Source of the DNA: Cyanophora paradoxa CCMP329
Taxonomy: Eukaryota > Plantae > Glaucophyta
Length of the DNA stretch: 47,937 nucleotides
Assembly (NCBI GenBank): GCA_004431415.1
Contig: QPMI01000016.1
Span: 1-47,937 of the forward strand
Reading direction: 5' to 3'
The notes below the pieces were generated by a model. The model was not told the DNA's origin and ran no database searches. It saw only the letters and a program-made list of their open reading frames with translations. Numbering within the stretch: position 1 is the first letter of the stretch; each line of letters begins with the position of its first letter. Position numbers and translations under genes: made by a program. Positions 7,689-47,937 of the stretch are shown piece by piece.

Positions 7689-7843
7689 GCTCTCGCACAG
7701 CATATTCAAGTAGCTGTAGCGTTACACTGTACAGAGAGAAAAATGTGGCCTGTGACTGAGAAAGACTGCAAGCTAAATTGTTCGGGGGACCCAAGGAGGC
7801 CTATGCAGCTGTACACTGGCGGGGCAACCTGATCGAGAGAAGG

Positions 7844-8666: not shown

Positions 8667-9343
8667 TGGAGTACTTTGTATGTCCCTAGCTATAAGAAGC
8701 GCTATGAGTCGCAGCCGGGCAGCTGAGCGCGTGCGCGTTTTGGGGTACTGCAAGCGCCGACGGGGCTGACTAGCTTCGCCTGCGCATGCAGCTGTGAAGG
8801 TCGACATGGCGCGAACATGAAGGTCAGCACGGGACGCCGCGGCCCGTCGGCTCGTACGCGTCGGGTGGCTGGTCTCCGCCACTCAGAGGCGCAAGTGCCG
8901 AGTTCTGTTTTGACGGCGTTGACCTGGCAGCTAACCGAGTCGACGGGTGCCTGGTCGCCGCCACTCAGGACTTCCCACATGCGGCAAACTTGGCCTAGTG
9001 ACCCCCTAGTCATCCCGGAGGCCCTGGCCGTGCCACAAGGAAAGAAGCCGCAAAAGGAACAAGTCTATCAGCCACTTATCCCACTCGGCCCAGTCGGAAG
9101 AACCTCAATGGAAGGCAAAGTAGATATCTTAGACATCTCTAGGGAAACTGCAAGTAGAAAAAACCACAGCAATAAAAGAAGCAGTAAACCGGAGTGCAAC
9201 CTGGGACCGCTTTATTTCGAGCCCAAGACGATTTGCCTTCCGGATTCTAACAAGAGCGATTCCAGCTGCCAACCGGAAGGCTACGGGTCCGAGAGACTCG
9301 TCGCACTGATTCATCTCCAGAGCCCGTTACTACTGTTCGCCAC

Positions 9344-10641: not shown

Positions 10642-10827
10642 GGTTTATTTCGTGCCGGCTTGCGACCTCTCGCTGCCGGTTTTACTTTGCCCAAGTCCTA
10701 AAGGAAGGAGACTTGGCAGTTACTAACAGGCTGGGGGCGTCGTACCCTGGTAGGCCTGCCCCCCTCCCCTCTTCCTTCAACTTCAGGCAGAGACATTTCG
10801 GTGGGCGGCCCAGCGGCTGGGACCACG

Positions 10828-24813: not shown

Positions 24814-25804
24814 ATGGCAGCCACCGATATGCTCTCAAAAGCAGCCGCCGCGGAGCTTTGGAACAGCGTTCCGGTGCGTATGACGCCGAGAGTCGGGGTT
24901 GCTTTGTCGCTCAACACCGAATTCTCGGCGCAGGAAGGGCAGAGGCCAGTTCTCCTGCAACTCATCGACGTGCGTAGTTTCTGCCCGAGCGCTCGTTCCT
25001 TGAATCGTGCGCTCACGCGCGCCCGGCTCCGCGTTCATTCGATAGCGTTTGGAGCGGCGGGCGCACGACGCCGAGGTGCGCAGTCTTCCCTTCCTGCGCT
25101 TCCTCGAATGACGCGTCCGTGCATGGACAGGCGGAGAAGGCGGAGGAAAAGAAGCGCCTGGAGGTGCGCTTCTTCCATCTTAAGCTTCGCTTCCTCGAAT
25201 GACGCGTCCATGCATGGACAGGCGGAGAAGGCGGAGGAAAAGAAGCGCGCGGACGCAGCTGAGGTGCGCTTCTTCCATCTTAAGCTTCGCTTCCTCGAAT
25301 GACGCGTCCGTGCATGGACAGGCGGAGAAGGCGGAGGAAAAGAAGCGCGCGGACGCAGCTGAGGTGCGCTTCTTCCATCTTAAGCTTCGCTTCCTCGAAT
25401 GACGCGTCCGTGCATGGACAGGCGGAGAAGGCGGAGGAAAAGAAGCGCGCGGACGCAGCTGAGGTGCGCGCTTGAATCCGGCTGCATCTCTTGCGCTTGT
25501 CATAACGTTCACGCAGGCTAGCTTGCTCTACAAGCTTGCAAAGCGATTTTTCGCGTATAACCCGCTCATGTAGGCACACCCCGTGTCTTTTGCTGCTGCA
25601 GTCAGCGCTGGCACTGCCGCCTCCTTGTTCTTCTTCTCGTATTTGGGCCGAGCCTTCAACCACAGCCGTCAGGACTATCACGATTCGCAGTCCTACCGCT
25701 CGGCAATAGCCAATGATGGTCTCTCCGCCTGCGGCTATTTCGTTGCGGTTCTCTCCTCCATCATCACCCTGCCAGCAGCCCTGCAGAAGCTGCGAGTAGG
25801 TTAG
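24814..25804 (+). CDS. Small multi-exon coiled-coil protein with a probable C-terminal two-TM hairpin
   Basis: MAATDMLSKAAAAELWNSVP|EGQRPVLLQLID|RLERRAHDAE|AEKAEEKKRLE|(AEKAEEKKRADAAE)x3 with phase-0 GT-AG introns. The final exon is either ASLLYKLAKRFFAYNPLM* (to 25573) or the hydrophobic AHPVSFAAAVSAGTAASLFFFSYLG...GYFVAVLSSIITLPAAL..* (25574-25804). Confidence 0.65.
25098..25469 (+). repeat. 100-bp tandem repeat = 42-nt exon + 58-nt intron, ~3.7 copies
   Basis: Period of 100 (GACGCGTCC at 25201, 25301, 25401). Each unit is CAG|GCGGAGAAG...GCTGAG|GTGCGC...TGAC...CAG. Confidence 0.9.

Positions 25805-26229: not shown

Positions 26230-26263
<34 letters not shown>
26230..26263. repeat. Poly-G run (34 nt)
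   Basis: Read directly; a second run lies at ~19071-19088. Confidence 0.9.
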
Positions 26264-26827: not shown

Positions 26828-27659
26828 TTACATGTATACTTGCGGGGGTGGGTGCTCACGTCGACGCAACTCCCCAGTTTGATGCGGTGTCCCCTGCTGC
26901 AGCTGCAGCTGGGAGTCCCCCTGCCGCTGTGATCTCTGTGACGTCGACTGCGAACTCCTGATAGACAGGCTGCGGCGGTACGATGTCCAAAACTGGATGC
27001 TTAACGCCGCTAGAGCTGGCATCACGCCAAAGACAGAGTTGAAGAATGAACTTATGGAAGCTTCCCCAGCTCGGATGGCGAAGAGGAAGCTACAGATTGC
27101 GGCAACTACAGTCAAACCTACAAAGATCCAGAAAGGGAATCTCGCCATTGCCTGCTCAGTTGCGTTTAAGTTTGTAGAACCAATGTGAAAAAAGAACGAA
27201 GGGCCATCCCTATGTTATTATGAGCAAACTCTTGCAAAAGAGAGGGGCGGCGGGAGGGCGGGGCACACCGCGTCCTCCTCAACTGCCTCCTTTACATTCT
27301 CCATCTTGGACCATGGTCAGCAAAAAGCAGAGCGAAGCGAAAGCCCGGTTACCTTGGTTTCAAGCTGCTCCATCTTGGACCATGGTCAGCAAAAAGCAGA
27401 GCGAAGCGAAAGCCCGGTTACCTTGGTTTCAAGCTGCTCCATCTTGGACCATGGTCAGCAAAAGCAGAGCGAAGCGAAAGCCCGGTTACCTTGGTTTCAA
27501 GCTGCTCCATCTTGGACTGCATCGTCTGCAGCTGGTCGCCGATACCACCTTTTGAGGGAGAGGACGCGGTGAGCGCAGCGAAGTGACAAGTGACAGAAGA
27601 CAATGCGAACCTAACTTTTCCAGGATCGCTACGTCAGACAAACTTGTTGGCGCTGCCAT
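26828..27659 (-). CDS. Small multi-exon coiled-coil protein with a C-terminal two-TM hairpin
   Basis: MAAPTSLSDVAILEKLG|GIGDQLQTMQSKMEQLETK|MEQLETK|MEQLETK|MENVKEAVEEDA|(GWPF)|AMARFPFWIFVGLTVVAAICSFLFAI...FNSVFGVMPALAALSIQFW...*, with canonical GT-AG introns (CTGAC branch points in the repeated ones). Confidence 0.68.
27299..27516 (-). repeat. 69-bp tandem repeat = 21-nt exon + 48-nt intron, 3 copies
   Basis: Minus-strand unit: ATGGAGCAGCTTGAAACCAAG|GTAACC...GCTGACCATGGTCCAAG. Confidence 0.9.
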
Positions 27660-28210: not shown

Positions 28211-29174
28211 TCTGTTCGGTGCGGCCCGATTAAACTAGGGGGAGCGATTGGCGAGAGACCGAAGCGCTTAGCACGAGCTAGTACGCATCTAAATGCATAT
28301 CTGGTGCTCAGTCTCTCGCGGACGCGGTACAAAATTTTCCTAGATGTATGGTCATAGAAAGGCGACGAGGAAATGGCCAGTTTCGCGGCGAGCTAGCCGA
28401 GCTAGCAGTGCGCCCGGCCGGCGACTTATTGCCCCAGCGTTCGAGTCCCGGGAAGGGCAGTTGGGGGGAGCGGGGGGGCCTGGGCGGGCCTTGAGCTGCC
28501 TTGCGCTGTCGAGGGCGGAAGAGGGGCCGGGGCGCAGCGACCGCCGAGGCCAACTTTCGCGCGGCGAGGTTCTGGCGGGAGACCAAAAATGTTTTTCATC
28601 TCGGCTGATCTAAAATGCACTTCCTACCTGCCCGGTCTCGCGCCAGTCACTCGCTGTGCTCCGCTTTAATTTCGGCTGGACTTGTATGGCATCTGTTCGG
28701 TGCGGCCCGATTAAACTAGGGGAGCGATTGGCGAGAGACCGAAGCGCTTAGCACGAGCTAGTACGCATCTAAATGCATATCTGGTGCTCAGTCTCTCGCG
28801 GACGCGGTACAAATTTCCTAGATGTATGGTCATAGAAAGGCGACGAGGAAATGGCCAGTTTCGCGGCGAGCTAGCCGAGCTAGCAGTGCGCCCGGCCGGC
28901 GACTTATTGCCCCAGCGTTCGAGTCCCGGGAAGGGCAGTTGGGGGGAGCGGGGGGGCCTGGGCGGGCCTTGAGCTGCCTTGCGCTGTCGAGGGCGGAAGA
29001 GGGGGCCGGGGCGCAGCGACCGCCGAGGCCAACTTTCGCGCGGCGAGGTTCTGGCGGGAGACCAAAAATGTTTTTCATCTCGGCTGATCTAAAATGCACT
29101 TCCTACCTGCCCGGTCTCGCGCCAGTCACTCGCTGTGCTCCGCTTTAATTTCGGCTGGACTTGTATGGCATCTG
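28211..29174. repeat. Block 1 of the ~481-bp tandem array: exactly two units bounded by TCTG
   Basis: Units start TCTGTTCGGTGCGG at 28211 and 28692. The block ends ...GTATGGCA TCTG at 29174. Confidence 0.97.
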
Positions 29175-30629
29175 AGCGGTACCCCCCCTGCCGACGGGCG
29201 CCCTTCTAGCGAGGATTCTCTGCCTTCGACGCACCTATACGCACCTGGTTCGTGTTCTATGCATCCTCCTCTACTACTGCCCTGCTTTGCGGCCACCACA
29301 TTCGAATCTCCACCACCTATCGGTTGTTCTCTGCCTGCGGGCGCTTCCTTGTTGTCAATCTGCCTTCGGGCACAATACGCTTGTTGTCCATCTGCCTTCG
29401 GGCACAATCTCTGATAGCGGCGACCGTGCCCATTGGTTTCCCGCCACTTCCGTCGACCGTCCCTTAGCGTCTCGCCCATGCCATGTTATTGCTTTTGTCC
29501 TTCAGCTGCTCTTGTAGCTCATCCATCTCCTGCGCAGTGCGTACAATCCTCATGCCTCCCAGGCGTGCTCCCGCGCCCCAGGCATCTGATGGCGCACCTT
29601 CTGCGGACGTCGGCACACCTTTATGCACCTGCTTCGTGCCATATGCATCCGCCTGCTTCTTCGTTATGCCCGGCGGGCGCCTTGTCACTTTCCTTGTCGC
29701 CGTTTGGTTGTCGTCTGCCTTCGGACGCTTCTCTCTGACGAATCTGTCTTCGGGCACAAGACTCTTCACGCTTGCTGAATTTCCGATCCCGGCAGCCGCA
29801 CCCGCTGGTCTCCCGCCACTGGCGTTGGCCGTATTCTGCTCCTGCCTCGTACACGCAGCGCCAGCTATGCTCCGTTCATGTGCAGTGCTTATCATGACAT
29901 GTGCAGGGCGTCCGCTTCTGCTTGGTCTGCTCTTGTGGCTTTCTCGCCTTTGCACCCTGCCTTCGCATCTGCAGCTTTGCTACTCTTTGTCCGACCCATC
30001 CTCTCTTCCTCTTTGCTTCACTTGTCCGACCCATCCTCTCTTCCTATTTGCCTTTCTTTTTGGATCTTGATTCGTCTCTAAATCTCAATTCATTTTTCTC
30101 AATTCCTTTCGTGTCTGCTGCCATGCTTTTGTTTTAGCTTGCACTGAACACGCCCGTTCACCCCATTTCCTTCAATTGCCTGGCCCATCAGTCTGTTGCT
30201 GGTTCTTCCTCTCGTGGCCATCACTCTGCTTCTCCACTGTGTAAGCTAGGCCGTTTTCGATGAGAGCTATACCATGATTGCATGGATGATGATGGTGCTG
30301 TCTTGTGATTCAATTGCGCTTGAACCTGCCTCTGTTTCAATTTTGTGGGTAGCCACCCTCAATACCCCGGGCGGCTCGATAGGGAGCGGGTCGTTCCGGG
30401 ATTCGGGGTTTTCCATGGCGGGGACCCTGTGGGTCTCTGCATGGTTGCTCTCCCTTTGCTCTTTTGGCGCAGGAGCTTTGGCCCCTGCCCCTAGCGGTGC
30501 GTACGCACAACACTACCTGTGCCAGGAAGGTCCCTGGCGTGCCTTGCACGTCCCTTTCGGGGCCTCTGCGGCGCTGCTATACCTTGTCACCCTGGTCCAC
30601 GGGCGTGTCTTTTGCTTCATCTCTCTCTC
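29175..30629. other. 1.46-kb non-coding, pyrimidine-rich spacer interrupting the array (insertion, or internal region of the element)
   Basis: Flanked by TCTG on both sides and ending in (CT)n. It has an internal degenerate duplication (~29190-29460 vs ~29585-29830) and carries the reverse complement of an array motif. Confidence 0.8.
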
Positions 30630-33600
30630 TCTGTTCGGTGCGGCCCGATTAAACTAGGGGGAGCGATTGGCGAGAGACCGAAGCGCTTAGCACGAGCTAG
30701 TACGCATCTAAATGCATATCTGGTGCTCAGTCTCTCGCGGACGCGGTACAAAATTTTCCTAGATGTATGGTCATAGAAAGGCGACGAGGAAATGGCCAGT
30801 TTCGCGGCGAGCTAGCCGAGCTAGCAGTGCGCCCGGCCGGCGACTTATTGCCCAGCGTTCGAGTCCCGGAAGGGCAGTTGGGGGAGCGGGGGGCCTGGGC
30901 GGGCCTTGAGCTGCCTTGCGCTGTCGAGGGCGGAAGAGGGGGCCGGGGCGCAGCGACCGCCGAGGCCAACTTTCGCGCGCGAGGTTCTGGCGGGAGACCA
31001 AAATGTTTTTCATCTCGGCTGATCTAAAATGCACTTCCTACCTGCCCGGTCTCGCGCCAGTCACTCGCTGTGCTCCGCTTTAATTTCGGCTGGACTTGTA
31101 TGGCATCTGTTCGGTGCGGCCCGATTAAACTAGGGGGAGCGATTGGCGAGAGACCGAAGCGCTTAGCACGAGCTAGTACGCATCTAAATGCATATCTGGT
31201 GCTCAGTCTCTCGCGGACGCGGTACAAAATTTTCCTAGATGTATGGTCATAGAAAGGCGACGAGGAAATGGCCAGTTTCGCGGCGAGCTAGCCGAGCTAG
31301 CAGTGCGCCCGGCCGGCGACTTATTGCCCCAGCGTTCGAGTCCCGGGAAGGGCAGTTGGGGGGAGCGGGGGGGCCTGGGCGGGCCTTGAGCTGCCTTGCG
31401 CTGTCGAGGGCGGAAGAGGGGGCCGGGGCGCAGCGACCGCCGAGGCCAACTTTCGCGCGGCGAGGTTCTGGCGGGAGACCAAAAATGTTTTTCATCTCGG
31501 CTGATCTAAAATGCACTTCCTACCTGCCCGGTCTCGCGCCAGTCACTCGCTGTGCTCCGCTTTAATTTCGGCTGGACTTGTATGGCATCTGTTCGGTGCG
31601 GCCCGATTAAACTAGGGGAGCGATTGGCGAGAGACCGAAGCGCTTAGCACGAGCTAGTACGCATCTAAATGCATATCTGGTGCTCAGTCTCTCGCGGACG
31701 CGGTACAAAATTTTCCTAGATGTATGGTCATAGAAAGGCGACGAGGAAATGGCCAGTTTCGCGGCGAGCTAGCCGAGCTAGCAGTGCGCCCGGCCGGCGA
31801 CTTATTGCCCCAGCGTTCGAGTCCCGGGAAGGGCAGTTGGGGGGAGCGGGGGGGCCTGGGCGGGCCTTGAGCTGCCTTGCGCTGTCGAGGGCGGAAGAGG
31901 GGGCCGGGGCGCAGCGACCGCCGAGGCCAACTTTCGCGCGGCGAGGTTCTGGCGGGAGACCAAAAATGTTTTTCATCTCGGCTGATCTAAAATGCACTTC
32001 CTACCTGCCCGGTCTCGCGCCAGTCACTCGCTGTGCTCCGCTTTAATTTCGGCTGGACTTGTATGGCATCTGTTCGGTGCGGCCCGATTAAACTAGGGGG
32101 AGCGATTGGCGAGAGACCGAAGCGCTTAGCACGAGCTAGTACGCATCTAAATGCATATCTGGTGCTCAGTCTCTCGCGGACGCGGTACAAAATTTTCCTA
32201 GATGTATGGTCATAGAAAGGCGACGAGGAAATGGCCAGTTTCGCGGCGAGCTAGCCGAGCTAGCAGTGCGCCCGGCCGGCGACTTATTGCCCCAGCGTTC
32301 GAGTCCCGGGAAGGGCAGTTGGGGGGAGCGGGGGGGCCTGGGCGGGCCTTGAGCTGCCTTGCGCTGTCGAGGGCGGAAGAGGGGGCCGGGGCGCAGCGAC
32401 CGCCGAGGCCAACTTTCGCGCGGCGAGGTTCTGGCGGGAGACCAAAAATGTTTTTCATCTCGGCTGATCTAAAATGCACTTCCTACCTGCCCGGTCTCGC
32501 GCCAGTCACTCGCTGTGCTCCGCTTTAATTTCGGCTGGACTTGTATGGCATCTGTTCGGTGCGGCCCGATTAAACTAGGGGGAGCGATTGGCGAGAGACC
32601 GAAGCGCTTAGCACGAGCTAGTACGCATCTAAATGCATATCTGGTGCTCAGTCTCTCGCGGACGCGGTACAAAATTTTCCTAGATGTATGGTCATAGAAA
32701 GGCGACGAGGAAAGGCCAGTTTCGCGGCGAGCTAGCCGAGCTAGCAGTGCGCCCGGCCGGCGACTTATTGCCCCAGCGTTCGAGTCCCGGGAAGGGCAGT
32801 TGGGGGGAGCGGGGGGGCCTGGGCGGGCCTTGAGCTGCCTTGCGCTGTCGAGGGCGGAAGAGGGGGCCGGGGCGCAGCGACCGCCGAGGCCAACTTTCGC
32901 GCGCGAGGTTCTGGCGGGAGACCAAAAATGTTTTTCATCTCGGCTGATCTAAAATGCACTTCCTACCTGCCCGGTCTCGCGCCAGTCACTCGCTGTGCTC
33001 CGCTTTAATTTCGGCTGGACTTGTATGGCATCTGTTCGGTGCGGCCCGATTAAACTAGGGGGAGCGATTGGCGAGAGACCGAAGCGCTTAGCACGAGCTA
33101 GTACGCATCTAAATGCATATCTGGTGCTCAGTCTCTCGCGGACGCGGTACAAAATTTTCCTAGATGTATGGTCATAGAAAGGCGACGAGGAAAGGCCAGT
33201 TTCGCGGCGAGCTAGCCGAGCTAGCAGTGCGCCCGGCCGGCGACTTATTGCCCCAGCGTTCGAGTCCCGGGAAGGGCAGTTGGGGGAGCGGGGGGCCTGG
33301 GCGGGCCTTGAGCTGCCTTGCGCTGTCGAGGGCGGAAGAGGGGGCCGGGGCGCAGCGACCGCCGAGGCCAACTTTCGCACAGCGAGGTTCTGGCGGGAGA
33401 CCAAAAATGTTTTTCATCTCGGCTGATCTAAAATGCACTTCCTACCTGCCCGGTCTCGCGCCAGTCACTCGCTGTGCTCCGCTTTAATTTCGGCTGGACT
33501 TGTATGGCATCTGTTCGGTGCGGCCCGATTAAACTAGGGGGAGCGATTGGCGAGAGACCGAAGCGCTTAGCACGAGCTAGTACGCATCTAAATGCATATC

Positions 33601-36600
33601 TGGTGCTCAGTCTCTCGCGGACGCGGTACAAAATTTTCCTAGATGTATGGTCATAGAAAGGCGACGAGGAAAAGGCCAGTTTCGCGGCGAGCTAGCCGAG
33701 CTAGCAGTGCGCCCGGCCGGCGACTTATTGCCCAGCGTTCGAGTCCCGGGAAGGGCAGTTGGGGGAGCGGGGGGCCTGGGCGGGCCTTGAGCTGCCTTGC
33801 GCTGTCGAGGGCGGAAGAGGGGGCCGGGGCGCAGCGACCGCCGAGGCCAACTTTCGCACAGCGAGGTTCTGGCGGGAGACCAAAAATGTTTTTCATCTCG
33901 GCTGATCTAAAATGCACTTCCTACCTGCCCGGTCTCGCGCCAGTCACTCGCTGTGCTCCGCTTTAATTTCGGCTGGACTTGTATGGCATCTGTTCGGTGC
34001 GGCCCGATTAAACTAGGGGGAGCGATTGGCGAGAGACCGAAGCGCTTAGCACGAGCTAGTACGCATCTAAATGCATATCTGGTGCTCAGTCTCTCGCGGA
34101 CGCGGTACAAAATTTTCCTAGATGTATGGTCATAGAAAGGCGACGAGGAAAGGCCAGTTTCGCGGCGAGCTAGCCGAGCTAGCAGTGCGCCCGGCCGGCG
34201 ACTTATTGCCCCAGCGTTCGAGTCCCGGGAAGGGCAGTTGGGGGGAGCGGGGGGCCTGGGCGGGCCTTGAGCTGCCTTGCGCTGTCGAGGGCGGAAGAGG
34301 GGGCCGGGGCGCAGCGACCGCCGAGGCCAACTTTCGCACAGCGAGGTTCTGGCGGGAGACCAAAAATGTTTTTCATCTCGGCTGATCTAAAATGCACTTC
34401 CTACCTGCCCGGTCTCGCGCCAGTCACTCGCTGTGCTCCGCTTTAATTTCGGCTGGACTTGTATGGCATCTGTTCGGTGCGGCCCGATTAAACTAGGGGG
34501 AGCGATTGGCGAGAGACCGAAGCGCTTAGCACGAGCTAGTACGCATCTAAATGCATATCTGGTGCTCAGTCTCTCGCGGACGCGGTACAAAATTTTCCTA
34601 GATGTATGGTCATAGAAAGGCGACGAGGAAAGGCCAGTTTCGCGGCGAGCTAGCCGAGCTAGCAGTGCGCCCGGCCGGCGACTTATTGCCCCAGCGTTCG
34701 AGTCCCGGGAAGGGCAGTTGGGGGGAGCGGGGGGCCTGGGCGGGCCTTGAGCTGCCTTGCGCTGTCGAGGGCGGAAGAGGGGGCCGGGGCGCAGCGACCG
34801 CCGAGGCCAACTTTCGCACAGCGAGGTTCTGGCGGGAGACCAAAAATGTTTTTCATCTCGGCTGATCTAAAATGCACTTCCTACCTGCCCGGTCTCGCGC
34901 CAGTCACTCGCTGTGCTCCGCTTTAATTTCGGCTGGACTTGTATGGCATCTGTTCGGTGCGGCCCGATTAAACTAGGGGAGCGATTGGCGAGAGACCGAA
35001 GCGCTTAGCACGAGCTAGTACGCATCTAAATGCATATCTGGTGCTCAGTCTCTCGCGGACGCGGTACAAAATTTTCCTAGATGTATGGTCATAGAAAGGC
35101 GACGAGGAAAGGCCAGTTTCGCGGCGAGCTAGCCGAGCTAGCAGTGCGCCCGGCCGGCGACTTATTGCCCCAGCGTTCGAGTCCCGGGAAGGGCAGTTGG
35201 GGGGAGCGGGGGGCCTGGGCGGGCCTTGAGCTGCCTTGCGCTGTCGAGGGCGGAAGAGGGGGCCGGGGCGCAGCGACCGCCGAGGCCAACTTTCGCACAG
35301 CGAGGTTCTGGCGGGAGACCAAAAATGTTTTTCATCTCGGCTGATCTAAAATGCACTTCCTACCTGCCCGGTCTCGCGCCAGTCACTCGCTGTGCTCCGC
35401 TTTAATTTCGGCTGGACTTGTATGGCATCTGTTCGGTGCGGCCCGATTAAACTAGGGGGAGCGATTGGCGAGAGACCGAAGCGCTTAGCACGAGCTAGTA
35501 CGCATCTAAATGCATATCTGGTGCTCAGTCTCTCGCGGACGCGGTACAAAATTTTCCTAGATGTATGGTCATAGAAAGGCGACGAGGAAAAGGCCAGTTT
35601 CGCGGCGAGCTAGCCGAGCTAGCAGTGCGCCCGGCCGGCGACTTATTGCCCCAGCGTTCGAGTCCCGGGAAGGGCAGTTGGGGGGAGCGGGGGGGCCTGG
35701 GCGGGCCTTGAGCTGCCTTGCGCTGTCGAGGGCGGAAGAGGGGGCCGGGGCGCAGCGACCGCCGAGGCCAACTTTCGCACAGCGAGGTTCTGGCGGGAGA
35801 CCAAAAATGTTTTTCATCTCGGCTGATCTAAAATGCACTTCCTACCTGCCCGGTCTCGCGCCAGTCACTCGCTGTGCTCCGCTTTAATTTCGGCTGGACT
35901 TGTATGGCATCTGTTCGGTGCGGCCCGATTAAACTAGGGGGAGCGATTGGCGAGAGACCGAAGCGCTTAGCACGAGCTAGTACGCATCTAAATGCATATC
36001 TGGTGCTCAGTCTCTCGCGGACGCGGTACAAAATTTTCCTAGATGTATGGTCATAGAAAGGCGACGAGGAAAAGGCCAGTTTCGCGGCGAGCTAGCCGAG
36101 CTAGCAGTGCGCCCGGCCGGCGACTTATTGCCCCAGCGTTCGAGTCCCGGGAAGGGCAGTTGGGGGAGCGGGGGGGCCTGGGCGGGCCTTGAGCTGCCTT
36201 GCGCTGTCGAGGGCGGAAGAGGGGGCCGGGGCGCAGCGACCGCCGAGGCCAACTTTCGCACAGCGAGGTTCTGGCGGGAGACCAAAAATGTTTTTCATCT
36301 CGGCTGATCTAAAATGCACTTCCTACCTGCCCGGTCTCGCGCCAGTCACTCGCTGTGCTCCGCTTTAATTTCGGCTGGACTTGTATGGCATCTGTTCGGT
36401 GCGGCCCGATTAAACTAGGGGGAGCGATTGGCGAGAGACCGAAGCGCTTAGCACGAGCTAGTACGCATCTAAATGCATATCTGGTGCTCAGTCTCTCGCG
36501 GACGCGGTACAAAATTTTCCTAGATGTATGGTCATAGAAAGGCGACGAGGAAAAGGCCAGTTTCGCGGCGAGCTAGCCGAGCTAGCAGTGCGCCCGGCCG

Positions 36601-39600
36601 GCGACTTATTGCCCCAGCGTTCGAGTCCCGGGAAGGGCAGTTGGGGGGAGCGGGGGGCCTGGGCGGGCCTTGAGCTGCCTTGCGCTGTCGAGGGCGGAAG
36701 AGGGGGCCGGGGCGCAGCGACCGCCGAGGCCAACTTTCGCACAGCGAGGTTCTGGCGGGAGACCAAAAATGTTTTTCATCTCGGCTGATCTAAAATGCAC
36801 TTCCTACCTGCCCGGTCTCGCGCCAGTCACTCGCTGTGCTCCGCTTTAATTTCGGCTGGACTTGTATGGCATCTGTTCGGTGCGGCCCGATTAAACTAGG
36901 GGGAGCGATTGGCGAGAGACCGAAGCGCTTAGCACGAGCTAGTACGCATCTAAATGCATATCTGGTGCTCAGTCTCTCGCGGACGCGGTACAAAATTTTC
37001 CTAGATGTATGGTCATAGAAAGGCGACGAGGAAAAGGCCAGTTTCGCGGCGAGCTAGCCGAGCTAGCAGTGCGCCCGGCCGGCGACTTATTGCCCAGCGT
37101 TCGAGTCCCGGGAAGGGCAGTTGGGGGGAGCGGGGGGCCTGGGCGGGCCTTGAGCTGCCTTGCGCTGTCGAGGGCGGAAGAGGGGGCCGGGGCGCAGCGA
37201 CCGCCGAGGCCAACTTTCGCACAGCGAGGTTCTGGCGGGAGACCAAAAATGTTTTTCATCTCGGCTGATCTAAAATGCACTTCCTACCTGCCCGGTCTCG
37301 CGCCAGTCACTCGCTGTGCTCCGCTTTAATTTCGGCTGGACTTGTATGGCATCTGTTCGGTGCGGCCCGATTAAACTAGGGGGAGCGATTGGCGAGAGAC
37401 CGAAGCGCTTAGCACGAGCTAGTACGCATCTAAATGCATATCTGGTGCTCAGTCTCTCGCGGACGCGGTACAAAATTTTCCTAGATGTATGGTCATAGAA
37501 AGGCGACGAGGAAAAGGCCAGTTTCGCGGCGAGCTAGCCGAGCTAGCAGTGCGCCCGGCCGGCGACTTATTGCCCCAGCGTTCGAGTCCCGGGAAGGGCA
37601 GTTGGGGGGAGCGGGGGGCCTGGGCGGGCCTTGAGCTGCCTTGCGCTGTCGAGGGCGGAAGAGGGGGCCGGGGCGCAGCGACCGCCGAGGCCAACTTTCG
37701 CACAGCGAGGTTCTGGCGGGAGACCAAAAATGTTTTTCATCTCGGCTGATCTAAAATGCACTTCCTACCTGCCCGGTCTCGCGCCAGTCACTCGCTGTGC
37801 TCCGCTTTAATTTCGGCTGGACTTGTATGGCATCTGTTCGGTGCGGCCCGATTAAACTAGGGGGAGCGATTGGCGAGAGACCGAAGCGCTTAGCACGAGC
37901 TAGTACGCATCTAAATGCATATCTGGTGCTCAGTCTCTCGCGGACGCGGTACAAAATTTTCCTAGATGTATGGTCATAGAAAGGCGACGAGGAAAAGGCC
38001 AGTTTCGCGGCGAGCTAGCCGAGCTAGCAGTGCGCCCGGCCGGCGACTTATTGCCCCAGCGTTCGAGTCCCGGGAAGGGCAGTTGGGGGAGCGGGGGGGC
38101 CTGGGCGGGCCTTGAGCTGCCTTGCGCTGTCGAGGGCGGAAGAGGGGGCCGGGGCGCAGCGACCGCCGAGGCCAACTTTCGCACAGCGAGGTTCTGGCGG
38201 GAGACCAAAAATGTTTTTCATCTCGGCTGATCTAAAATGCACTTCCTACCTGCCCGGTCTCGCGCCAGTCACTCGCTGTGCTCCGCTTTAATTTCGGCTG
38301 GACTTGTATGGCATCTGTTCGGTGCGGCCCGATTAAACTAGGGGGAGCGATTGGCGAGAGACCGAAGCGCTTAGCACGAGCTAGTACGCATCTAAATGCA
38401 TATCTGGTGCTCAGTCTCTCGCGGACGCGGTACAAAATTTTCCTAGATGTATGGTCATAGAAAGGCGACGAGGAAAAGGCCAGTTTCGCGGCGAGCTAGC
38501 CGAGCTAGCAGTGCGCCCGGCCGGCGACTTATTGCCCCAGCGTTCGAGTCCCGGGAAGGGCAGTTGGGGGGAGCGGGGGGCCTGGGCGGGCCTTGAGCTG
38601 CCTTGCGCTGTCGAGGGCGGAAGAGGGGGCCGGGGCGCAGCGACCGCCGAGGCCAACTTTCGCACAGCGAGGTTCTGGCGGGAGACCAAAAATGTTTTTC
38701 ATCTCGGCTGATCTAAAATGCACTTCCTACCTGCCCGGTCTCGCGCCAGTCACTCGCTGTGCTCCGCTTTAATTTCGGCTGGACTTGTATGGCATCTGTT
38801 CGGTGCGGCCCGATTAAACTAGGGGAGCGATTGGCGAGAGACCGAAGCGCTTAGCACGAGCTAGTACGCATCTAAATGCATATCTGGTGCTCAGTCTCTC
38901 GCGGACGCGGTACAAAATTTTCCTAGATGTATGGTCATAGAAAGGCGACGAGGAAAAGGCCAGTTTCGCGGCGAGCTAGCCGAGCTAGCAGTGCGCCCGG
39001 CCGGCGACTTATTGCCCCAGCGTTCGAGTCCCGGGAAGGGCAGTTGGGGGGAGCGGGGGGGCCTGGGCGGGCCTTGAGCTGCCTTGCGCTGTCGAGGGCG
39101 GAAGAGGGGGCCGGGGCGCAGCGACCGCCGAGGCCAACTTTCGCACAGCGAGGTTCTGGCGGGAGACCAAAAATGTTTTTCATCTCGGCTGATCTAAAAT
39201 GCACTTCCTACCTGCCCGGTCTCGCGCCAGTCACTCGCTGTGCTCCGCTTTAATTTCGGCTGGACTTGTATGGCATCTGTTCGGTGCGGCCCGATTAAAC
39301 TAGGGGGAGCGATTGGCGAGAGACCGAAGCGCTTAGCACGAGCTAGTACGCATCTAAATGCATATCTGGTGCTCAGTCTCTCGCGGACGCGGTACAAAAT
39401 TTTCCTAGATGTATGGTCATAGAAAGGCGACGAGGAAAAGGCCAGTTTCGCGGCGAGCTAGCCGAGCTAGCAGTGCGCCCGGCCGGCGACTTATTGCCCC
39501 AGCGTTCGAGTCCCGGGAAGGGCAGTTGGGGGAGCGGGGGGGCCTGGGCGGGCCTTGAGCTGCCTTGCGCTGTCGAGGGCGGAAGAGGGGGCCGGGGCGC

Positions 39601-42600
39601 AGCGACCGCCGAGGCCAACTTTCGCACAGCGAGGTTCTGGCGGGAGACCAAAAATGTTTTTCATCTCGGCTGATCTAAAATGCACTTCCTACCTGCCCGG
39701 TCTCGCGCCAGTCACTCGCTGTGCTCCGCTTTAATTTCGGCTGGACTTGTATGGCATCTGTTCGGTGCGGCCCGATTAAACTAGGGGGAGCGATTGGCGA
39801 GAGACCGAAGCGCTTAGCACGAGCTAGTACGCATCTAAATGCATATCTGGTGCTCAGTCTCTCGCGGACGCGGTACAAAATTTTCCTAGATGTATGGTCA
39901 TAGAAAGGCGACGAGGAAAAGGCCAGTTTCGCGGCGAGCTAGCCGAGCTAGCAGTGCGCCCGGCCGGCGACTTATTGCCCCAGCGTTCGAGTCCCGGGAA
40001 GGGCAGTTGGGGGGAGCGGGGGGGCCTGGGCGGGCCTTGAGCTGCCTTGCGCTGTCGAGGGCGGAAGAGGGGGCCGGGGCGCAGCGACCGCCGAGGCCAA
40101 CTTTCGCACAGCGAGGTTCTGGCGGGAGACCAAAAATGTTTTTCATCTCGGCTGATCTAAAATGCACTTCCTACCTGCCCGGTCTCGCGCCAGTCACTCG
40201 CTGTGCTCCGCTTTAATTTCGGCTGGACTTGTATGGCATCTGTTCGGTGCGGCCCGATTAAACTAGGGGGAGCGATTGGCGAGAGACCGAAGCGCTTAGC
40301 ACGAGCTAGTACGCATCTAAATGCATATCTGGTGCTCAGTCTCTCGCGGACGCGGTACAAAATTTTCCTAGATGTATGGTCATAGAAAGGCGACGAGGAA
40401 AAGGCCAGTTTCGCGGCGAGCTAGCCGAGCTAGCAGTGCGCCCGGCCGGCGACTTATTGCCCCAGCGTTCGAGTCCCGGGAAGGGCAGTTGGGGGGAGCG
40501 GGGGGCCTGGGCGGGCCTTGAGCTGCCTTGCGCTGTCGAGGGCGGAAGAGGGGGCCGGGGCGCAGCGACCGCCGAGGCCAACTTTCGCACAGCGAGGTTC
40601 TGGCGGGAGACCAAAAATGTTTTTCATCTCGGCTGATCTAAAATGCACTTCCTACCTGCCCGGTCTCGCGCCAGTCACTCGCTGTGCTCCGCTTTAATTT
40701 CGGCTGGACTTGTATGGCATCTGTTCGGTGCGGCCCGATTAAACTAGGGGGAGCGATTGGCGAGAGACCGAAGCGCTTAGCACGAGCTAGTACGCATCTA
40801 AATGCATATCTGGTGCTCAGTCTCTCGCGGACGCGGTACAAAATTTTCCTAGATGTATGGTCATAGAAAGGCGACGAGGAAAAGGCCAGTTTCGCGGCGA
40901 GCTAGCCGAGCTAGCAGTGCGCCCGGCCGGCGACTTATTGCCCCAGCGTTCGAGTCCCGGGAAGGGCAGTTGGGGGAGCGGGGGGCCTGGGCGGGCCTTG
41001 AGCTGCCTTGCGCTGTCGAGGGCGGAAGAGGGGGCCGGGGCGCAGCGACCGCCGAGGCCAACTTTCGCACAGCGAGGTTCTGGCGGGAGACCAAAAATGT
41101 TTTTCATCTCGGCTGATCTAAAATGCACTTCCTACCTGCCCGGTCTCGCGCCAGTCACTCGCTGTGCTCCGCTTTAATTTCGGCTGGACTTGTATGGCAT
41201 CTGTTCGGTGCGGCCCGATTAAACTAGGGGGAGCGATTGGCGAGAGACCGAAGCGCTTAGCACGAGCTAGTACGCATCTAAATGCATATCTGGTGCTCAG
41301 TCTCTCGCGGACGCGGTACAAAATTTTCCTAGATGTATGGTCATAGAAAGGCGACGAGGAAAAGGCCAGTTTCGCGGCGAGCTAGCCGAGCTAGCAGTGC
41401 GCCCGGCCGGCGACTTATTGCCCCAGCGTTCGAGTCCCGGGAAGGGCAGTTGGGGGAGCGGGGGGGCCTGGGCGGGCCTTGAGCTGCCTTGCGCTGTCGA
41501 GGGCGGAAGAGGGGGCCGGGGCGCAGCGACCGCCGAGGCCAACTTTCGCACAGCGAGGTTCTGGCGGGAGACCAAAAATGTTTTTCATCTCGGCTGATCT
41601 AAAATGCACTTCCTACCTGCCCGGTCTCGCGCCAGTCACTCGCTGTGCTCCGCTTTAATTTCGGCTGGACTTGTATGGCATCTGTTCGGTGCGGCCCGAT
41701 TAAACTAGGGGGAGCGATTGGCGAGAGACCGAAGCGCTTAGCACGAGCTAGTACGCATCTAAATGCATATCTGGTGCTCAGTCTCTCGCGGACGCGGTAC
41801 AAAATTTTCCTAGATGTATGGTCATAGAAAGGCGACGAGGAAAAGGCCAGTTTCGCGGCGAGCTAGCCGAGCTAGCAGTGCGCCCGGCCGGCGACTTATT
41901 GCCCCAGCGTTCGAGTCCCGGGAAGGGCAGTTGGGGGAGCGGGGGGGCCTGGGCGGGCCTTGAGCTGCCTTGCGCTGTCGAGGGCGGAAGAGGGGCCGGG
42001 GCGCAGCGACCGCCGAGGCCAACTTTCGCACAGCGAGGTTCTGGCGGGAGACCAAAAATGTTTTTCATCTCGGCTGATCTAAAATGCACTTCCTACCTGC
42101 CCGGTCTCGCGCCAGTCACTCGCTGTGCTCCGCTTTAATTTCGGCTGGACTTGTATGGCATCTGTTCGGTGCGGCCCGATTAAACTAGGGGGAGCGATTG
42201 GCGAGAGACCGAAGCGCTTAGCACGAGCTAGTACGCATCTAAATGCATATCTGGTGCTCAGTCTCTCGCGGACGCGGTACAAAATTTTCCTAGATGTATG
42301 GTCATAGAAAGGCGACGAGGAAAAGGCCAGTTTCGCGGCGAGCTAGCCGAGCTAGCAGTGCGCCCGGCCGGCGACTTATTGCCCCAGCGTTCGAGTCCCG
42401 GGAAGGGCAGTTGGGGGAGCGGGGGGGCCTGGGCGGGCCTTGAGCTGCCTTGCGCTGTCGAGGGCGGAAGAGGGGGCCGGGGCGCAGCGACCGCCGAGGC
42501 CAACTTTCGCACAGCGAGGTTCTGGCGGGAGACCAAAAATGTTTTTCATCTCGGCTGATCTAAAATGCACTTCCTACCTGCCCGGTCTCGCGCCAGTCAC

Positions 42601-45600
42601 TCGCTGTGCTCCGCTTTAATTTCGGCTGGACTTGTATGGCATCTGTTCGGTGCGGCCCGATTAAACTAGGGGGAGCGATTGGCGAGAGACCGAAGCGCTT
42701 AGCACGAGCTAGTACGCATCTAAATGCATATCTGGTGCTCAGTCTCTCGCGGACGCGGTACAAAATTTTCCTAGATGTATGGTCATAGAAAGGCGACGAG
42801 GAAAAGGCCAGTTTCGCGGCGAGCTAGCCGAGCTAGCAGTGCGCCCGGCCGGCGACTTATTGCCCCAGCGTTCGAGTCCCGGGAAGGGCAGTTGGGGGGA
42901 GCGGGGGGCCTGGGCGGGCCTTGAGCTGCCTTGCGCTGTCGAGGGCGGAAGAGGGGGCCGGGGCGCAGCGACCGCCGAGGCCAACTTTCGCACAGCGAGG
43001 TTCTGGCGGGAGACCAAAAATGTTTTTCATCTCGGCTGATCTAAAATGCACTTCCTACCTGCCCGGTCTCGCGCCAGTCACTCGCTGTGCTCCGCTTTAA
43101 TTTCGGCTGGACTTGTATGGCATCTGTTCGGTGCGGCCCGATTAAACTAGGGGGAGCGATTGGCGAGAGACCGAAGCGCTTAGCACGAGCTAGTACGCAT
43201 CTAAATGCATATCTGGTGCTCAGTCTCTCGCGGACGCGGTACAAAATTTTCCTAGATGTATGGTCATAGAAAGGCGACGAGGAAAAGGCCAGTTTCGCGG
43301 CGAGCTAGCCGAGCTAGCAGTGCGCCCGGCCGGCGACTTATTGCCCCAGCGTTCGAGTCCCGGGAAGGGCAGTTGGGGGGAGCGGGGGGGCCTGGGCGGG
43401 CCTTGAGCTGCCTTGCGCTGTCGAGGGCGGAAGAGGGGGCCGGGGCGCAGCGACCGCCGAGGCCAACTTTCGCACAGCGAGGTTCTGGCGGGAGACCAAA
43501 AATGTTTTTCATCTCGGCTGATCTAAAATGCACTTCCTACCTGCCCGGTCTCGCGCCAGTCACTCGCTGTGCTCCGCTTTAATTTCGGCTGGACTTGTAT
43601 GGCATCTGTTCGGTGCGGCCCGATTAAACTAGGGGGAGCGATTGGCGAGAGACCGAAGCGCTTAGCACGAGCTAGTACGCATCTAAATGCATATCTGGTG
43701 CTCAGTCTCTCGCGGACGCGGTACAAAATTTTCCTAGATGTATGGTCATAGAAAGGCGACGAGGAAAAGGCCAGTTTCGCGGCGAGCTAGCCGAGCTAGC
43801 AGTGCGCCCGGCCGGCGACTTATTGCCCCAGCGTTCGAGTCCCGGGAAGGGCAGTTGGGGGAGCGGGGGGCCTGGGCGGGCCTTGAGCTGCCTTGCGCTG
43901 TCGAGGGCGGAAGAGGGGGCCGGGGCGCAGCGACCGCCGAGGCCAACTTTCGCACAGCGAGGTTCTGGCGGGAGACCAAAAATGTTTTTCATCTCGGCTG
44001 ATCTAAAATGCACTTCCTACCTGCCCGGTCTCGCGCCAGTCACTCGCTGTGCTCCGCTTTAATTTCGGCTGGACTTGTATGGCATCTGTTCGGTGCGGCC
44101 CGATTAAACTAGGGGGAGCGATTGGCGAGAGACCGAAGCGCTTAGCACGAGCTAGTACGCATCTAAATGCATATCTGGTGCTCAGTCTCTCGCGGACGCG
44201 GTACAAAATTTTCCTAGATGTATGGTCATAGAAAGGCGACGAGGAAAAGGCCAGTTTCGCGGCGAGCTAGCCGAGCTAGCAGTGCGCCCGGCCGGCGACT
44301 TATTGCCCCAGCGTTCGAGTCCCGGGAAGGGCAGTTGGGGGAGCGGGGGGCCTGGGCGGGCCTTGAGCTGCCTTGCGCTGTCGAGGGCGGAAGAGGGGGC
44401 CGGGGCGCAGCGACCGCCGAGGCCAACTTTCGCACAGCGAGGTTCTGGCGGGAGACCAAAAATGTTTTTCATCTCGGCTGATCTAAAATGCACTTCCTAC
44501 CTGCCCGGTCTCGCGCCAGTCACTCGCTGTGCTCCGCTTTAATTTCGGCTGGACTTGTATGGCATCTGTTCGGTGCGGCCCGATTAAACTAGGGGGAGCG
44601 ATTGGCGAGAGACCGAAGCGCTTAGCACGAGCTAGTACGCATCTAAATGCATATCTGGTGCTCAGTCTCTCGCGGACGCGGTACAAAATTTTCCTAGATG
44701 TATGGTCATAGAAAGGCGACGAGGAAAAGGCCAGTTTCGCGGCGAGCTAGCCGAGCTAGCAGTGCGCCCGGCCGGCGACTTATTGCCCCAGCGTTCGAGT
44801 CCCGGGAAGGGCAGTTGGGGGGAGCGGGGGGCCTGGGCGGGCCTTGAGCTGCCTTGCGCTGTCGAGGGCGGAAGAGGGGGCCGGGGCGCAGCGACCGCCG
44901 AGGCCAACTTTCGCACAGCGAGGTTCTGGCGGGAGACCAAAAATGTTTTTCATCTCGGCTGATCTAAAATGCACTTCCTACCTGCCCGGTCTCGCGCCAG
45001 TCACTCGCTGTGCTCCGCTTTAATTTCGGCTGGACTTGTATGGCATCTGTTCGGTGCGGCCCGATTAAACTAGGGGGAGCGATTGGCGAGAGACCGAAGC
45101 GCTTAGCACGAGCTAGTACGCATCTAAATGCATATCTGGTGCTCAGTCTCTCGCGGACGCGGTACAAAATTTTCCTAGATGTATGGTCATAGAAAGGCGA
45201 CGAGGAAAAGGCCAGTTTCGCGGCGAGCTAGCCGAGCTAGCAGTGCGCCCGGCCGGCGACTTATTGCCCCAGCGTTCGAGTCCCGGGAAGGGCAGTTGGG
45301 GGGAGCGGGGGGGCCTGGGCGGGCCTTGAGCTGCCTTGCGCTGTCGAGGGCGGAAGAGGGGGCCGGGGCGCAGCGACCGCCGAGGCCAACTTTCGCACAG
45401 CGAGGTTCTGGCGGGAGACCAAAAATGTTTTTCATCTCGGCTGATCTAAAATGCACTTCCTACCTGCCCGGTCTCGCGCCAGTCACTCGCTGTGCTCCGC
45501 TTTAATTTCGGCTGGACTTGTATGGCATCTGTTCGGTGCGGCCCGATTAAACTAGGGGGAGCGATTGGCGAGAGACCGAAGCGCTTAGCACGAGCTAGTA

Positions 45601-47937
45601 CGCATCTAAATGCATATCTGGTGCTCAGTCTCTCGCGGACGCGGTACAAAATTTTCCTAGATGTATGGTCATAGAAAGGCGACGAGGAAAAGGCCAGTTT
45701 CGCGGCGAGCTAGCCGAGCTAGCAGTGCGCCCGGCCGGCGACTTATTGCCCAGCGTTCGAGTCCCGGGAAGGGCAGTTGGGGGGAGCGGGGGGGCCTGGG
45801 CGGGCCTTGAGCTGCCTTGCGCTGTCGAGGGCGGAAGAGGGGGCCGGGGCGCAGCGACCGCCGAGGCCAACTTTCGCACAGCGAGGTTCTGGCGGGAGAC
45901 CAAAAATGTTTTTCATCTCGGCTGATCTAAAATGCACTTCCTACCTGCCCGGTCTCGCGCCAGTCACTCGCTGTGCTCCGCTTTAATTTCGGCTGGACTT
46001 GTATGGCATCTGTTCGGTGCGGCCCGATTAAACTAGGGGGAGCGATTGGCGAGAGACCGAAGCGCTTAGCACGAGCTAGTACGCATCTAAATGCATATCT
46101 GGTGCTCAGTCTCTCGCGGACGCGGTACAAAATTTTCCTAGATGTATGGTCATAGAAAGGCGACGAGGAAAAGGCCAGTTTCGCGGCGAGCTAGCCGAGC
46201 TAGCAGTGCGCCCGGCCGGCGACTTATTGCCCCAGCGTTCGAGTCCCGGGAAGGGCAGTTGGGGGGAGCGGGGGGCCTGGGCGGGCCTTGAGCTGCCTTG
46301 CGCTGTCGAGGGCGGAAGAGGGGCCGGGGCGCAGCGACCGCCGAGGCCAACTTTCGCACAGCGAGGTTCTGGCGGGAGACCAAAAATGTTTTTCATCTCG
46401 GCTGATCTAAAATGCACTTCCTACCTGCCCGGTCTCGCGCCAGTCACTCGCTGTGCTCCGCTTTAATTTCGGCTGGACTTGTATGGCATCTGTTCGGTGC
46501 GGCCCGATTAAACTAGGGGGAGCGATTGGCGAGAGACCGAAGCGCTTAGCACGAGCTAGTACGCATCTAAATGCATATCTGGTGCTCAGTCTCTCGCGGA
46601 CGCGGTACAAAATTTTCCTAGATGTATGGTCATAGAAAGGCGACGAGGAAAAGGCCAGTTTCGCGGCGAGCTAGCCGAGCTAGCAGTGCGCCCGGCCGGC
46701 GACTTATTGCCCCAGCGTTCGAGTCCCGGGAAGGGCAGTTGGGGGAGCGGGGGGGCCTGGGCGGGCCTTGAGCTGCCTTGCGCTGTCGAGGGCGGAAGAG
46801 GGGGCCGGGGCGCAGCGACCGCCGAGGCCAACTTTCGCACAGCGAGGTTCTGGCGGGAGACCAAAAATGTTTTTCATCTCGGCTGATCTAAAATGCACTT
46901 CCTACCTGCCCGGTCTCGCGCCAGTCACTCGCTGTGCTCCGCTTTAATTTCGGCTGGACTTGTATGGCATCTGTTCGGTGCGGCCCGATTAAACTAGGGG
47001 GAGCGATTGGCGAGAGACCGAAGCGCTTAGCACGAGCTAGTACGCATCTAAATGCATATCTGGTGCTCAGTCTCTCGCGGACGCGGTACAAAATTTTCCT
47101 AGATGTATGGTCATAGAAAGGCGACGAGGAAAAGGCCAGTTTCGCGGCGAGCTAGCCGAGCTAGCAGTGCGCCCGGCCGGCGACTTATTGCCCCAGCGTT
47201 CGAGTCCCGGGAAGGGCAGTTGGGGGGAGCGGGGGCCTGGGCGGGCCTTGAGCTGCCTTGCGCTGTCGAGGGCGGAAGAGGGGGCCGGGGCGCAGCGACC
47301 GCCGAGGCCAACTTTCGCACAGCGAGGTTCTGGCGGGAGACCAAAAATGTTTTTCATCTCGGCTGATCTAAAATGCACTTCCTACCTGCCCGGTCTCGCG
47401 CCAGTCACTCGCTGTGCTCCGCTTTAATTTCGGCTGGACTTGTATGGCATCTGTTCGGTGCGGCCCGATTAAACTAGGGGGAGCGATTGGCGAGAGACCG
47501 AAGCGCTTAGCACGAGCTAGTACGCATCTAAATGCATATCTGGTGCTCAGTCTCTCGCGGACGCGGTACAAAATTTTCCTAGATGTATGGTCATAGAAAG
47601 GCGACGAGGAAAAGGCCAGTTTCGCGGCGAGCTAGCCGAGCTAGCAGTGCGCCCGGCCGGCGACTTATTGCCCCAGCGTTCGAGTCCCGGGAAGGGCAGT
47701 TGGGGGGAGCGGGGGGGCCTGGGCGGGCCTTGAGCTGCCTTGCGCTGTCGAGGGCGGAAGAGGGGGCCGGGGCGCAGCGACCGCCGAGGCCAACTTTCGC
47801 ACAGCGAGGTTCTGGCGGGAGACCAAAAATGTTTTTCATCTCGGCTGATCTAAAATGCACTTCCTACCTGCCCGGTCTCGCGCCAGTCACTCGCTGTGCT
47901 CCGCTTTAATTTCGGCTGGACTTGTATGGCATCTGTT
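30630..47937. repeat. Block 2 of the ~481-bp tandem array: 36 head-to-tail units running off the window end
   Basis: First unit at 30630 and last junction at 47932 (17302 bp / ~481 = 36). Units are near-identical apart from homopolymer lengths and three substitutions. Confidence 0.98.

Follow-up and report, generated by a model that had tools for sequence, protein, structure and literature searches.

In the locus described here, a 481-bp unit is repeated head-to-tail 38 times over ~18 kb of the window (the whole 47,937-nucleotide stretch of Cyanophora paradoxa DNA that was analysed), and all three borders between the array and other DNA fall in one register, GGCA/TCTG. The explanation that accounts best for these observations, and that is considered somewhat probable, is a single array of an abundant satellite that was entered after its second unit by a 1.45-kb element, with the shared phase being a hot spot for breakage or joining. 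The coordinates of the features are collected in Table 1.

Layout, borders and abundance of the array

Tandem Repeats Finder detected 36.0 copies of the 481-bp unit with 99% matches at 30630-47937, and a motif marking the unit start occurs 38 times in the window, only on the + strand and at a spacing of 476-482 bp. The window stops 6 nt into the unit following the 36th of block 2, and no telomere-type repeat is present within it. Differences between units are nearly all changes in homopolymer length, probably reflecting long-read error. Ungapped comparison and direct reading place the beginning of unit similarity exactly at TCTG at both 28211 and 30630, the sequence upstream being dissimilar, and at 29174 the likeness to the unit stops after TCTG. 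Past this position, 8 of 13 bases still agree with the unit start, a level equalled by only 0.9% of the neighbouring 13-mers. The earlier note had observed that the three borders share the GGCA/TCTG register and that block 1 equals exactly two units plus TCTG, and this observation holds, with the caveat that the three borders represent two events rather than three.

Table 1 Features of the satellite array edge and the spacer
Feature	Position	Strand	Description
Block 1	28211..29174	+	Two complete 481-bp units and a closing TCTG; both units with edge variants
TCTG, left copy	29171..29174	+	Direct repeat flanking the spacer
Spacer	29175..30629	+	1,455 bp, CT-rich, (TC)n right end, probably non-coding
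TCTG, right copy	30630..30633	+	First four bases of block 2
Block 2	30630..47937	+	36 units and 6 bases
Module M1	31144..31214	+	In the reference unit: 12-bp box, 45-nt spacer with ATCTAAATGCA, inverted box
Module M2	31455..31555	+	In the same unit as M1: same two boxes, separated by a 49-nt spacer
Junction palindrome	31542..31635	.	Imperfect, across the unit-unit junction; arms ~45 nt, 31-nt centre

The unit shows the characters of satellite DNA, namely non-coding units following one another head-to-tail in a long array, a high copy number with many variants, a homogenised interior and divergent edges. Its variants were found in 928 contigs of run X1 and 428 contigs of run X5 at 90-100% identity, and in public contigs its summed depth reaches up to ~1,000x that of the spacer, a contig depth that is not to be read as an exact copy number. 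The open reading frame (ORF) of the unit has no homologues, and its product is not on record. When the edge of the array, a dimer of the unit and the spacer were compared with Rfam, no family came near threshold and no ribozyme or tRNA-like match was seen, while ARAGORN found no tRNA; on these empty results, a ribozyme satellite, an array of RNA genes and a tRNA-derived SINE were rejected. No Pfam matches were obtained for ORFs of at least 150 aa at 20.8-26.1 kb, and a homology search with a 930-aa ORF at 13061-15850 had no hits at 1e-10. In metagenomes, six loci matched an 18-mer of the unit start, but the agreement extended over just 18-22 bases and is attributed to chance. A literature search for satellites in the deep-branching algal lineage of the host found no description.

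Edge variants and the 1.45-kb spacer

The history of the array can be read from variants confined to its edge. T at unit position 164 is found in units 1-6 only, comprising all of block 1 and the four leading units of block 2, and G at position 352 in units 1-7 only, with the block-1 units carrying G/G at 352/354. The remaining units have A at 164 and A/A at 352/354, and block 2 is composed of 4-5 initial units of the edge type, one intermediate and 31 units of the type that forms the genomic majority. At the position-164 site (place 28852), A accounts for 182,258 of 191,452 in summed contig depth in run X1 and for 70,155 of 71,181 in run X5, and T164 thus belongs to fewer than about 5% of genomic copies, a rare variant that is common to both sides of the spacer. 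Removing 29175-30633 in silico restores an ordinary unit junction, and together with the occurrence of T164 across the spacer this indicates that blocks 1 and 2 are most likely a single array split by a later 1.45-kb insertion. The proposal of the earlier note, with independent integrations at a 4-bp core behind the three borders, is not supported, as the presence of this variant on either side of the spacer argues for two blocks that were formerly one array.

It could be argued that the layout is an assembly artefact, in which the spacer was misjoined to satellite reads or polishing removed differences between units. The array is located at the window end, the unit differences are of the homopolymer kind noted above, and the 29174/29175 border is bridged by no contig among those listed. 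Yet an 83-nt contig from an independent run matches 30602-30684 exactly and thereby bridges the spacer-array border, and the private variants of the edge follow an ordered pattern, making such an artefact very improbable.

The spacer contains five TCTG-YC-TTCGR motifs. As the spacer and the left flank resemble the unit no more than shuffles do, the spacer was rejected as a decayed satellite. None of four spacer ORFs has a Pfam match, and for two spacer ORFs neither a record nor a homologue was retrieved. The summed contig depth of the spacer is 800-2,000 in run X15 and ~115 in run X20, where that of the unit is 0-17; the RNA label of both runs is a guess, although the satellite is depleted 100-fold in both, which speaks against genomic DNA. 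Contigs from these presumed RNA runs are identical to 29208-29546 and 29585-30631, with zero differences. Two contigs continue past 30631 into non-array DNA, where they agree with each other at chance level (0.67) and have only TC, not TCTG, in common with the array start. In addition, DNA contigs from a slightly different copy of the spacer begin at 29182/29183, and in the DNA runs the last ~150 bases of the spacer are 6-10x deeper than the remainder, a change that is not a smooth gradient. Since the spacer is multi-copy and has the same end base beside unrelated DNA in other contigs, it is probably an inserted, transcribed, mobile and retroposon-like element. It carries neither poly(A) nor another standard retroposon tail, no coding capacity was detected in it, and it matches no known family.

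Two other origins of the break at 30631 were considered. Splicing was rejected, as neither strand offers GT or AG at the break unless chance matches are assumed. On the minus strand, the run-on sequence forms an open frame with TGA exactly at 30631; however, the reading of the spacer as a 3' UTR was abandoned, given that the two run-on contigs bear no relation to one another. The loose-end sequences of the listed public contigs occur nowhere else in the window.

In the favoured history, the element that entered after the second unit would probably be non-LTR retroposon-like, lying on the + strand and ending in a (TC)n tail, and its insertion would have left a TCTG duplication of 4 bp (at least 2 bp). 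The interior of the array would have been amplified and homogenised locally, with older variants remaining at the edge. The putative hot spot, in turn, may be caused by DNA structure, by a descent of the unit ends from those of an earlier inverted-repeat element or by the target taste of inserting elements.

The shared phase and the ends of the unit

If positions were random, the left edge of the array and the insertion would be expected to share a phase about once in 481 cases. TCTG is found three times per unit, at positions 1, 90 and 362, and the coincidence is therefore only 1 in 3 if TCTG suffices for the inserting element. Copies of the unit outside the window bear on this question. A 540-nt contig contains, behind unrelated DNA, sequence 91% alike to the unit and starting at 30633, and a 171-nt contig contains, likewise behind unrelated DNA, sequence that is 94% alike and starts 7 nt before TCTG. 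Two of the four visible breaks thus lie within +/-7 nt of the phase (p ~0.006 under uniform breaks), a result based on one window and a few assembled contigs, with 60 further loose ends outside the listing, from which a phase preference throughout the genome cannot be claimed.

An ordinary satellite, in which edge and insertion coincide by chance or in which the inserted element likes TCTG or TCT and primes on its (TC)n tail, could also be envisaged. The 1-in-3 expectation for an insertion seeking TCTG agrees with this, as does the combination of edge variants and a homogeneous interior, a classic satellite pattern, and breaks also recur at unit position 162, meaning that phase 1 is not exclusive. 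However, an ordinary satellite gives the left edge of the array no reason to fall at TCTG, and it leaves aside both the two diverged copies near the same phase and the position of that phase at the centre of the junction palindrome, so this explanation is considered rather unlikely. The earlier view that the borders do not lie at an arbitrary phase is upheld by the shared phase, the diverged copies and the palindrome centre. The shared phase suggests a preferred break point; it does not show that the repeat jumps.

The GGCA/TCTG border is situated 0.5-4 nt from the centre of symmetry of the junction palindrome, whose folding is modestly above that of shuffles (z -2.2), and this centre may be inferred to be a preferred site of breakage or joining. 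Within the unit, M1 and M2 repeat one another in direct orientation, and either module is able to form a 12-bp stem with a loop of 45-49 nt. As single-stranded DNA, the fold of M2 is beaten by only 1 of 200 shuffles (z -3.15), that of M1 has a z of -1.3, and the last 60 nt of the unit fold no better than shuffles (z +1.1). The inverted symmetry of the unit ends that had been described earlier is real but weak, with a local score of 38 compared with 22 +/- 4 and a maximum of 37 for shuffles. It begins 15-16 nt inside each end, leaving the outermost bases unpaired, and a direct orientation scores about equally (36) because the module at each end is itself an inverted pair of the 12-bp box.

Mobile elements and comparison with known systems

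The reading put forward in the earlier note is that the unit itself is a non-autonomous mobile element with a circular or single-stranded intermediate and a TCTG core (or TC flanking TG...CA), having entered the locus once as a dimer and once as a longer multimer, with a right end that recreates the target and hence yields head-to-tail copies. All borders being in one phase, the whole number of units between TCTG copies in block 1 and the two diverged copies that begin no more than 7 nt from this phase are in line with such an element. So are the end modules, which as direct copies that each form a hairpin recall the subterminal hairpins of IS200/IS605-type HUH elements, and the sequence after 30631, which would suit an empty site with TC in common. 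Nevertheless, the confinement of a rare variant to block 1 and the first units of block 2 would be unexpected from two independent integrations out of a pool of the majority type. Furthermore, the run-on contigs share TC rather than TCTG and are mutually unrelated, and they therefore fit the end of the spacer element and not an empty site of the unit. No inverted repeat is formed by the outermost 10-15 bases of the unit, whose right end also lacks a hairpin of its own. Solo copies, empty sites of the unit, circular forms and an enzyme partner were not found in the one window and few public contigs. A mobile unit is thus an unlikely explanation, and the earlier proposal stands at best in part: the non-arbitrary phase remains, and the independent integrations at a 4-bp core do not.

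Comparison with the known classes of element gives a similarly mixed picture. As in arrays of cut-and-paste transposons, the same target duplication is found between and around the units of block 1 (TCTG-unit-TCTG-unit-TCTG), a pattern equally explained by one array and one insertion, but terminal inverted repeats reaching the ends are lacking. Canonical Helitrons have 5'-TC and 3'-CTRR ends, a 3' hairpin and insert between A and T, whereas the unit starts with TC but ends with GGCA, its left flanks end with T and C, and its 3' end shows no such hairpin. Cryptons and other tyrosine-recombinase elements use a core in which inverted binding arms enclose a 6-8 bp crossover region; here, the arms at the junction are 31 nt apart, and none of the scanned ORFs of the window encodes a tyrosine recombinase. 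Members of the IS200/IS605 family carry a subterminal hairpin at each end, the two being similar and on the same strand, and insert 3' of a fixed tetranucleotide without duplication. The unit, with TCTG preceding its left end and again at its right end, agrees with this rule, yet no HUH enzyme is linked to it. Finally, a solo LTR or LTR retrotransposon would show TG...CA with a 4-6 bp duplication, whereas the TG...CA register of the unit is flanked by 2 bp (TC) only, and an internal region, primer-binding site and polypurine tract are absent. It could be speculated, as a decidedly improbable scenario, that the unit is an undescribed glaucophyte non-autonomous element of the HUH type or of a site-specific recombinase, for which the right-end tetranucleotide is the target and each copy the next landing site. 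If so, junction cuts by the same enzyme would account for the array edge, for the capture of the 1.45-kb piece and perhaps for the end of the contig 6 nt beyond a junction.

Retroposons with insertions in tandem repeats are exemplified by R1 and R2 in rDNA and by repeat-specific LINEs of the R1 clade. The favoured history resembles these in that a transcribed, retroposon-like piece lies at a defined point of the array with a short duplication, and in that a simple-repeat tail can pair with a nicked target. It differs in that there is one insertion only, with no reverse transcriptase or endonuclease linked to it, and site specificity is a candidate property.

Tandem arrays of whole transposons that turn into satellites are represented by the hobo, Bari1 and R1 arrays of Drosophila (McGurk and Barbash 2018, PMC5932611). 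Like these, the present array consists of whole head-to-tail units with the same short repeat between and around them and inverted motifs at the ends, and the parallel extends to the ability of a dimer to grow into tens of copies through unequal exchange (PMC5932611). In contrast to them, the 481-bp unit has a far higher copy number, hundreds of variants and outermost bases that are not inverted repeats, and neither a free-standing copy nor a transposase partner is known. A likeness to the border phenomenon may be sought in the bivalve satellite phBglII400, which has its borders concentrated in a palindrome (Satovic et al. 2016, PMC5139131). Both satellites switch to other DNA abruptly and non-randomly at a point tied to a palindrome, which in phBglII400 lies in the monomer (PMC5139131), whereas the palindrome described here is imperfect and exists only across a junction of two units. 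The evidence amounts to four to five borders here versus sixteen for phBglII400 (PMC5139131).

As it stands, the locus is mainly a well-resolved edge of a satellite array with an inserted element. If borders and insertions do cluster at the centre of the palindrome, it would represent a clear example of a satellite that carries its own break or integration point, which would bear on how satellites seed new arrays and on the exchange between transposons and satellites.

Layout of the 481-bp array and its probable history

The G+C content of the gene-like part of the window is ~74% at 1-17000 and falls sharply at 17000-18000, from ~74-80% with long ORFs on both strands to ~59%, a level kept through the repeats and the satellite. 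The 481-bp tandem repeat, whose unit begins with TCTG, is present from 28211 in two blocks flanking a spacer. All 38 occurrences of the unit-start motif are on the + strand, spaced 476-482 bp apart with a single exception of 1,938 bp (28692 to 30630). Tandem Repeats Finder gives block 2 as 36.0 copies with 99% matches. The window, and probably the contig too, terminates at 47932-47937, six bases past the unit junction GGCA-TCTGTT (chance ~1-2%), which could be a coincidence or reflect reads tending to stop at the junction. Between the genes and the satellite, the 59% G+C zone holds two short repeats and a run of G. The zone also holds a pair of direct repeats, 2,965 bp apart and 99.7% identical, which may represent a small LTR-type or split-repeat element; close by are inverted motifs rich in GGCTCGAGCC and a run of poly-G.

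Coordinates of the array and of repeats in the surrounding sequence
Feature	Position	Strand	Description
Direct repeat, first copy	19183-19539		357 bp
Direct repeat, second copy	22148-22503		357 bp
100-bp repeat	25057-25469		~3-4 copies
G run	26230-26263		34 G
69-bp repeat	27299-27517		3.2 copies, 99% identical
Block 1	28211-29174	+	two units + TCTG
Spacer	29175-30629		between the blocks
Block 2	30630-47937	+	36 units + six bases, then window end

Aligning all 38 units revealed only three true substitution sites, while the remaining differences are in homopolymer length and are probably long-read error. T is found at unit position 164 in units 1-6 (the block 1 pair plus the four units that open block 2), and G at position 352 in units 1-7. 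One unit counts as intermediate, leaving 31 with A and A/A. At position 164, the summed depth of public contigs from the same organism is 95% A in DNA run X1 and 99% A in X5, which makes T a rare variant, restricted to the array edge and continuing across the spacer. Furthermore, removal of 29175-30633 gives back a normal unit junction. The simplest reading is therefore one array, with the edge oldest and the interior amplified, that was later split by 1,451 bp with flanking TCTG duplication. The three array borders, which could be taken as separate integrations, accordingly reduce to two events, the array edge and one insertion.

Borders and the phase of breaks

The borders were checked by direct reading and by base-by-base comparison with an internal junction. 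Likeness to the unit breaks off exactly at TCTG at 28211 and 30630, with upstream sequence showing no similarity, and at 29174 it ends just after TCTG, so the borders had been described correctly in the earlier note. The spacer start after 29174 matches the unit start at 8/13 bases, a level of match seen in just 0.9% of the 13-mers nearby. The spacer insertion lies in the same phase as the left edge of the array itself, a coincidence with odds of ~1 in 481 under random placement, or 1 in 3 if TCTG is all that the inserted element requires (TCTG is found at unit positions 1, 90, and 362). Two diverged copies behind unrelated DNA add independent left borders near phase 1, the GGCA|TCTG border: the unit part begins at 30633 in a 540-nt contig (91% alike) and 7 nt upstream of TCTG in a 171-nt contig (94% alike). 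Among the contig ends listed, from contigs that break at repeats and drop variants, a second recurrent break besides phase 1 lies at unit position 162 (28853), with two unrelated flanks per DNA run. One RNA-run contig spans exactly 28853-29170, and the summed depth is far higher over the unit middle (28782-29003 region) than over the unit ends, suggesting that an older element of ~320 bp may underlie a composite 481-bp unit.

The spacer

Sequence comparison found no likeness between the spacer and the unit, and searches for a Pfam domain, protein relatives, or an Rfam family returned none. In runs presumed to be RNA, the summed contig depth over the spacer was 800-2,000 (X15) and ~115 (X20) compared to 0-17 on the satellite. 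As genomic DNA would give the opposite ratio, the spacer sequence appears to be transcribed somewhere in the genome. Two stretches, 29208-29546 and 29585-30631, are matched by contigs with zero differences. Two contigs extend beyond 30631 into non-array sequence, where they are no more alike than expected by chance (0.67), placing the spacer right end in at least three contexts. In an independent run, an 83-nt contig matches 30602-30684 exactly, which rules out an assembly error at the spacer-array join. In addition, DNA contigs of a slightly different spacer copy start at 29182/29183, and in DNA runs the depth over the final ~150 bases, a stretch ending in (TC)n, exceeds that over the remainder by a factor of 6-10. 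The spacer thus behaves like a mobile element that is present in multiple copies and whose right end is defined, and we infer a class most like a + strand retroposon with a simple-repeat tail, although it shows no standard hallmark.

Several short internal segments of the spacer are common to other transcripts. The pieces at 29539-29610 (72 nt) and 30529-30572 (44 nt) turn up again in DNA contigs and in other transcripts, and a 1,819-nt RNA-run contig has only the 72-nt piece in common. The motif TCTG-(CC/TC)-TTCG(G/A), resembling the unit junction TCTG-TTCGG plus two extra bases, occurs in five + strand copies in the spacer (29219-29753) versus one in the other 28 kb, and as RNA gives GCC-UUCG-GGC tetraloop hairpins.

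Unit ends, junction palindrome, and mobility

The inverted symmetry that the earlier note had seen between the unit ends is real but weak (score 38 versus 22 +/- 4 for shuffles), and aligning the ends in direct orientation gives an equally good match. Both ends bear a module in which a 12-bp box and its inverted counterpart enclose a 45-49 nt spacer with ATCTAAA(A)TGCA. Several named element families were compared with the unit. The required ends, target, and 3' hairpin of a canonical Helitron are all absent, the junction does not provide the 6-8 bp crossover region of a tyrosine-recombinase core, the inverted repeats fail to reach the unit ends, unlike those of an inverted-repeat transposon, and the TG...CA register leaves only 2 bp flanking the unit, which sets it apart from an LTR. 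In layout, the unit resembles IS200/IS605-type elements, with two hairpin modules that are alike and point the same way and a fixed tetranucleotide before its left end and at its right end, yet the stems enclose long loops and are weakly supported, and no enzyme is linked to the unit, so that such an affinity is tentative. Searches by gene product, homologue, and metagenome scan added no copy of the unit or spacer to those in the public contigs.

At a unit junction, the abutting right and left ends together make an imperfect palindrome (~45-nt arms around a 31-nt centre), which as single-stranded DNA folds at -18.2 kcal/mol (z -2.2). Measured from the GGCA|TCTG border, its paired motifs lie at distances of 15 and 16, 18 and 21, and 38 and 46 nt, placing this border 0.5-4 nt from the symmetry centre. 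In one mollusc satellite, 13/16 breakpoints are reported to cluster in a palindrome (PMC5139131). Moreover, whole transposons form tandem dimers that then expand into arrays (PMC5932611). Breakage at the palindrome, expansion of a transposon dimer, or enzyme cutting at the junction would each fit the phase.

Of the earlier proposal that the unit is a discrete mobile element multimerising head-to-tail at a TCTG core, the non-random phase of the borders is likely to hold, while the three borders represent an array edge and one insertion. The proposal is thus partly supported, with mobility of the unit a candidate reading, and the kinds involved are already known, namely transposon-like satellites and satellites with borders in a palindrome.
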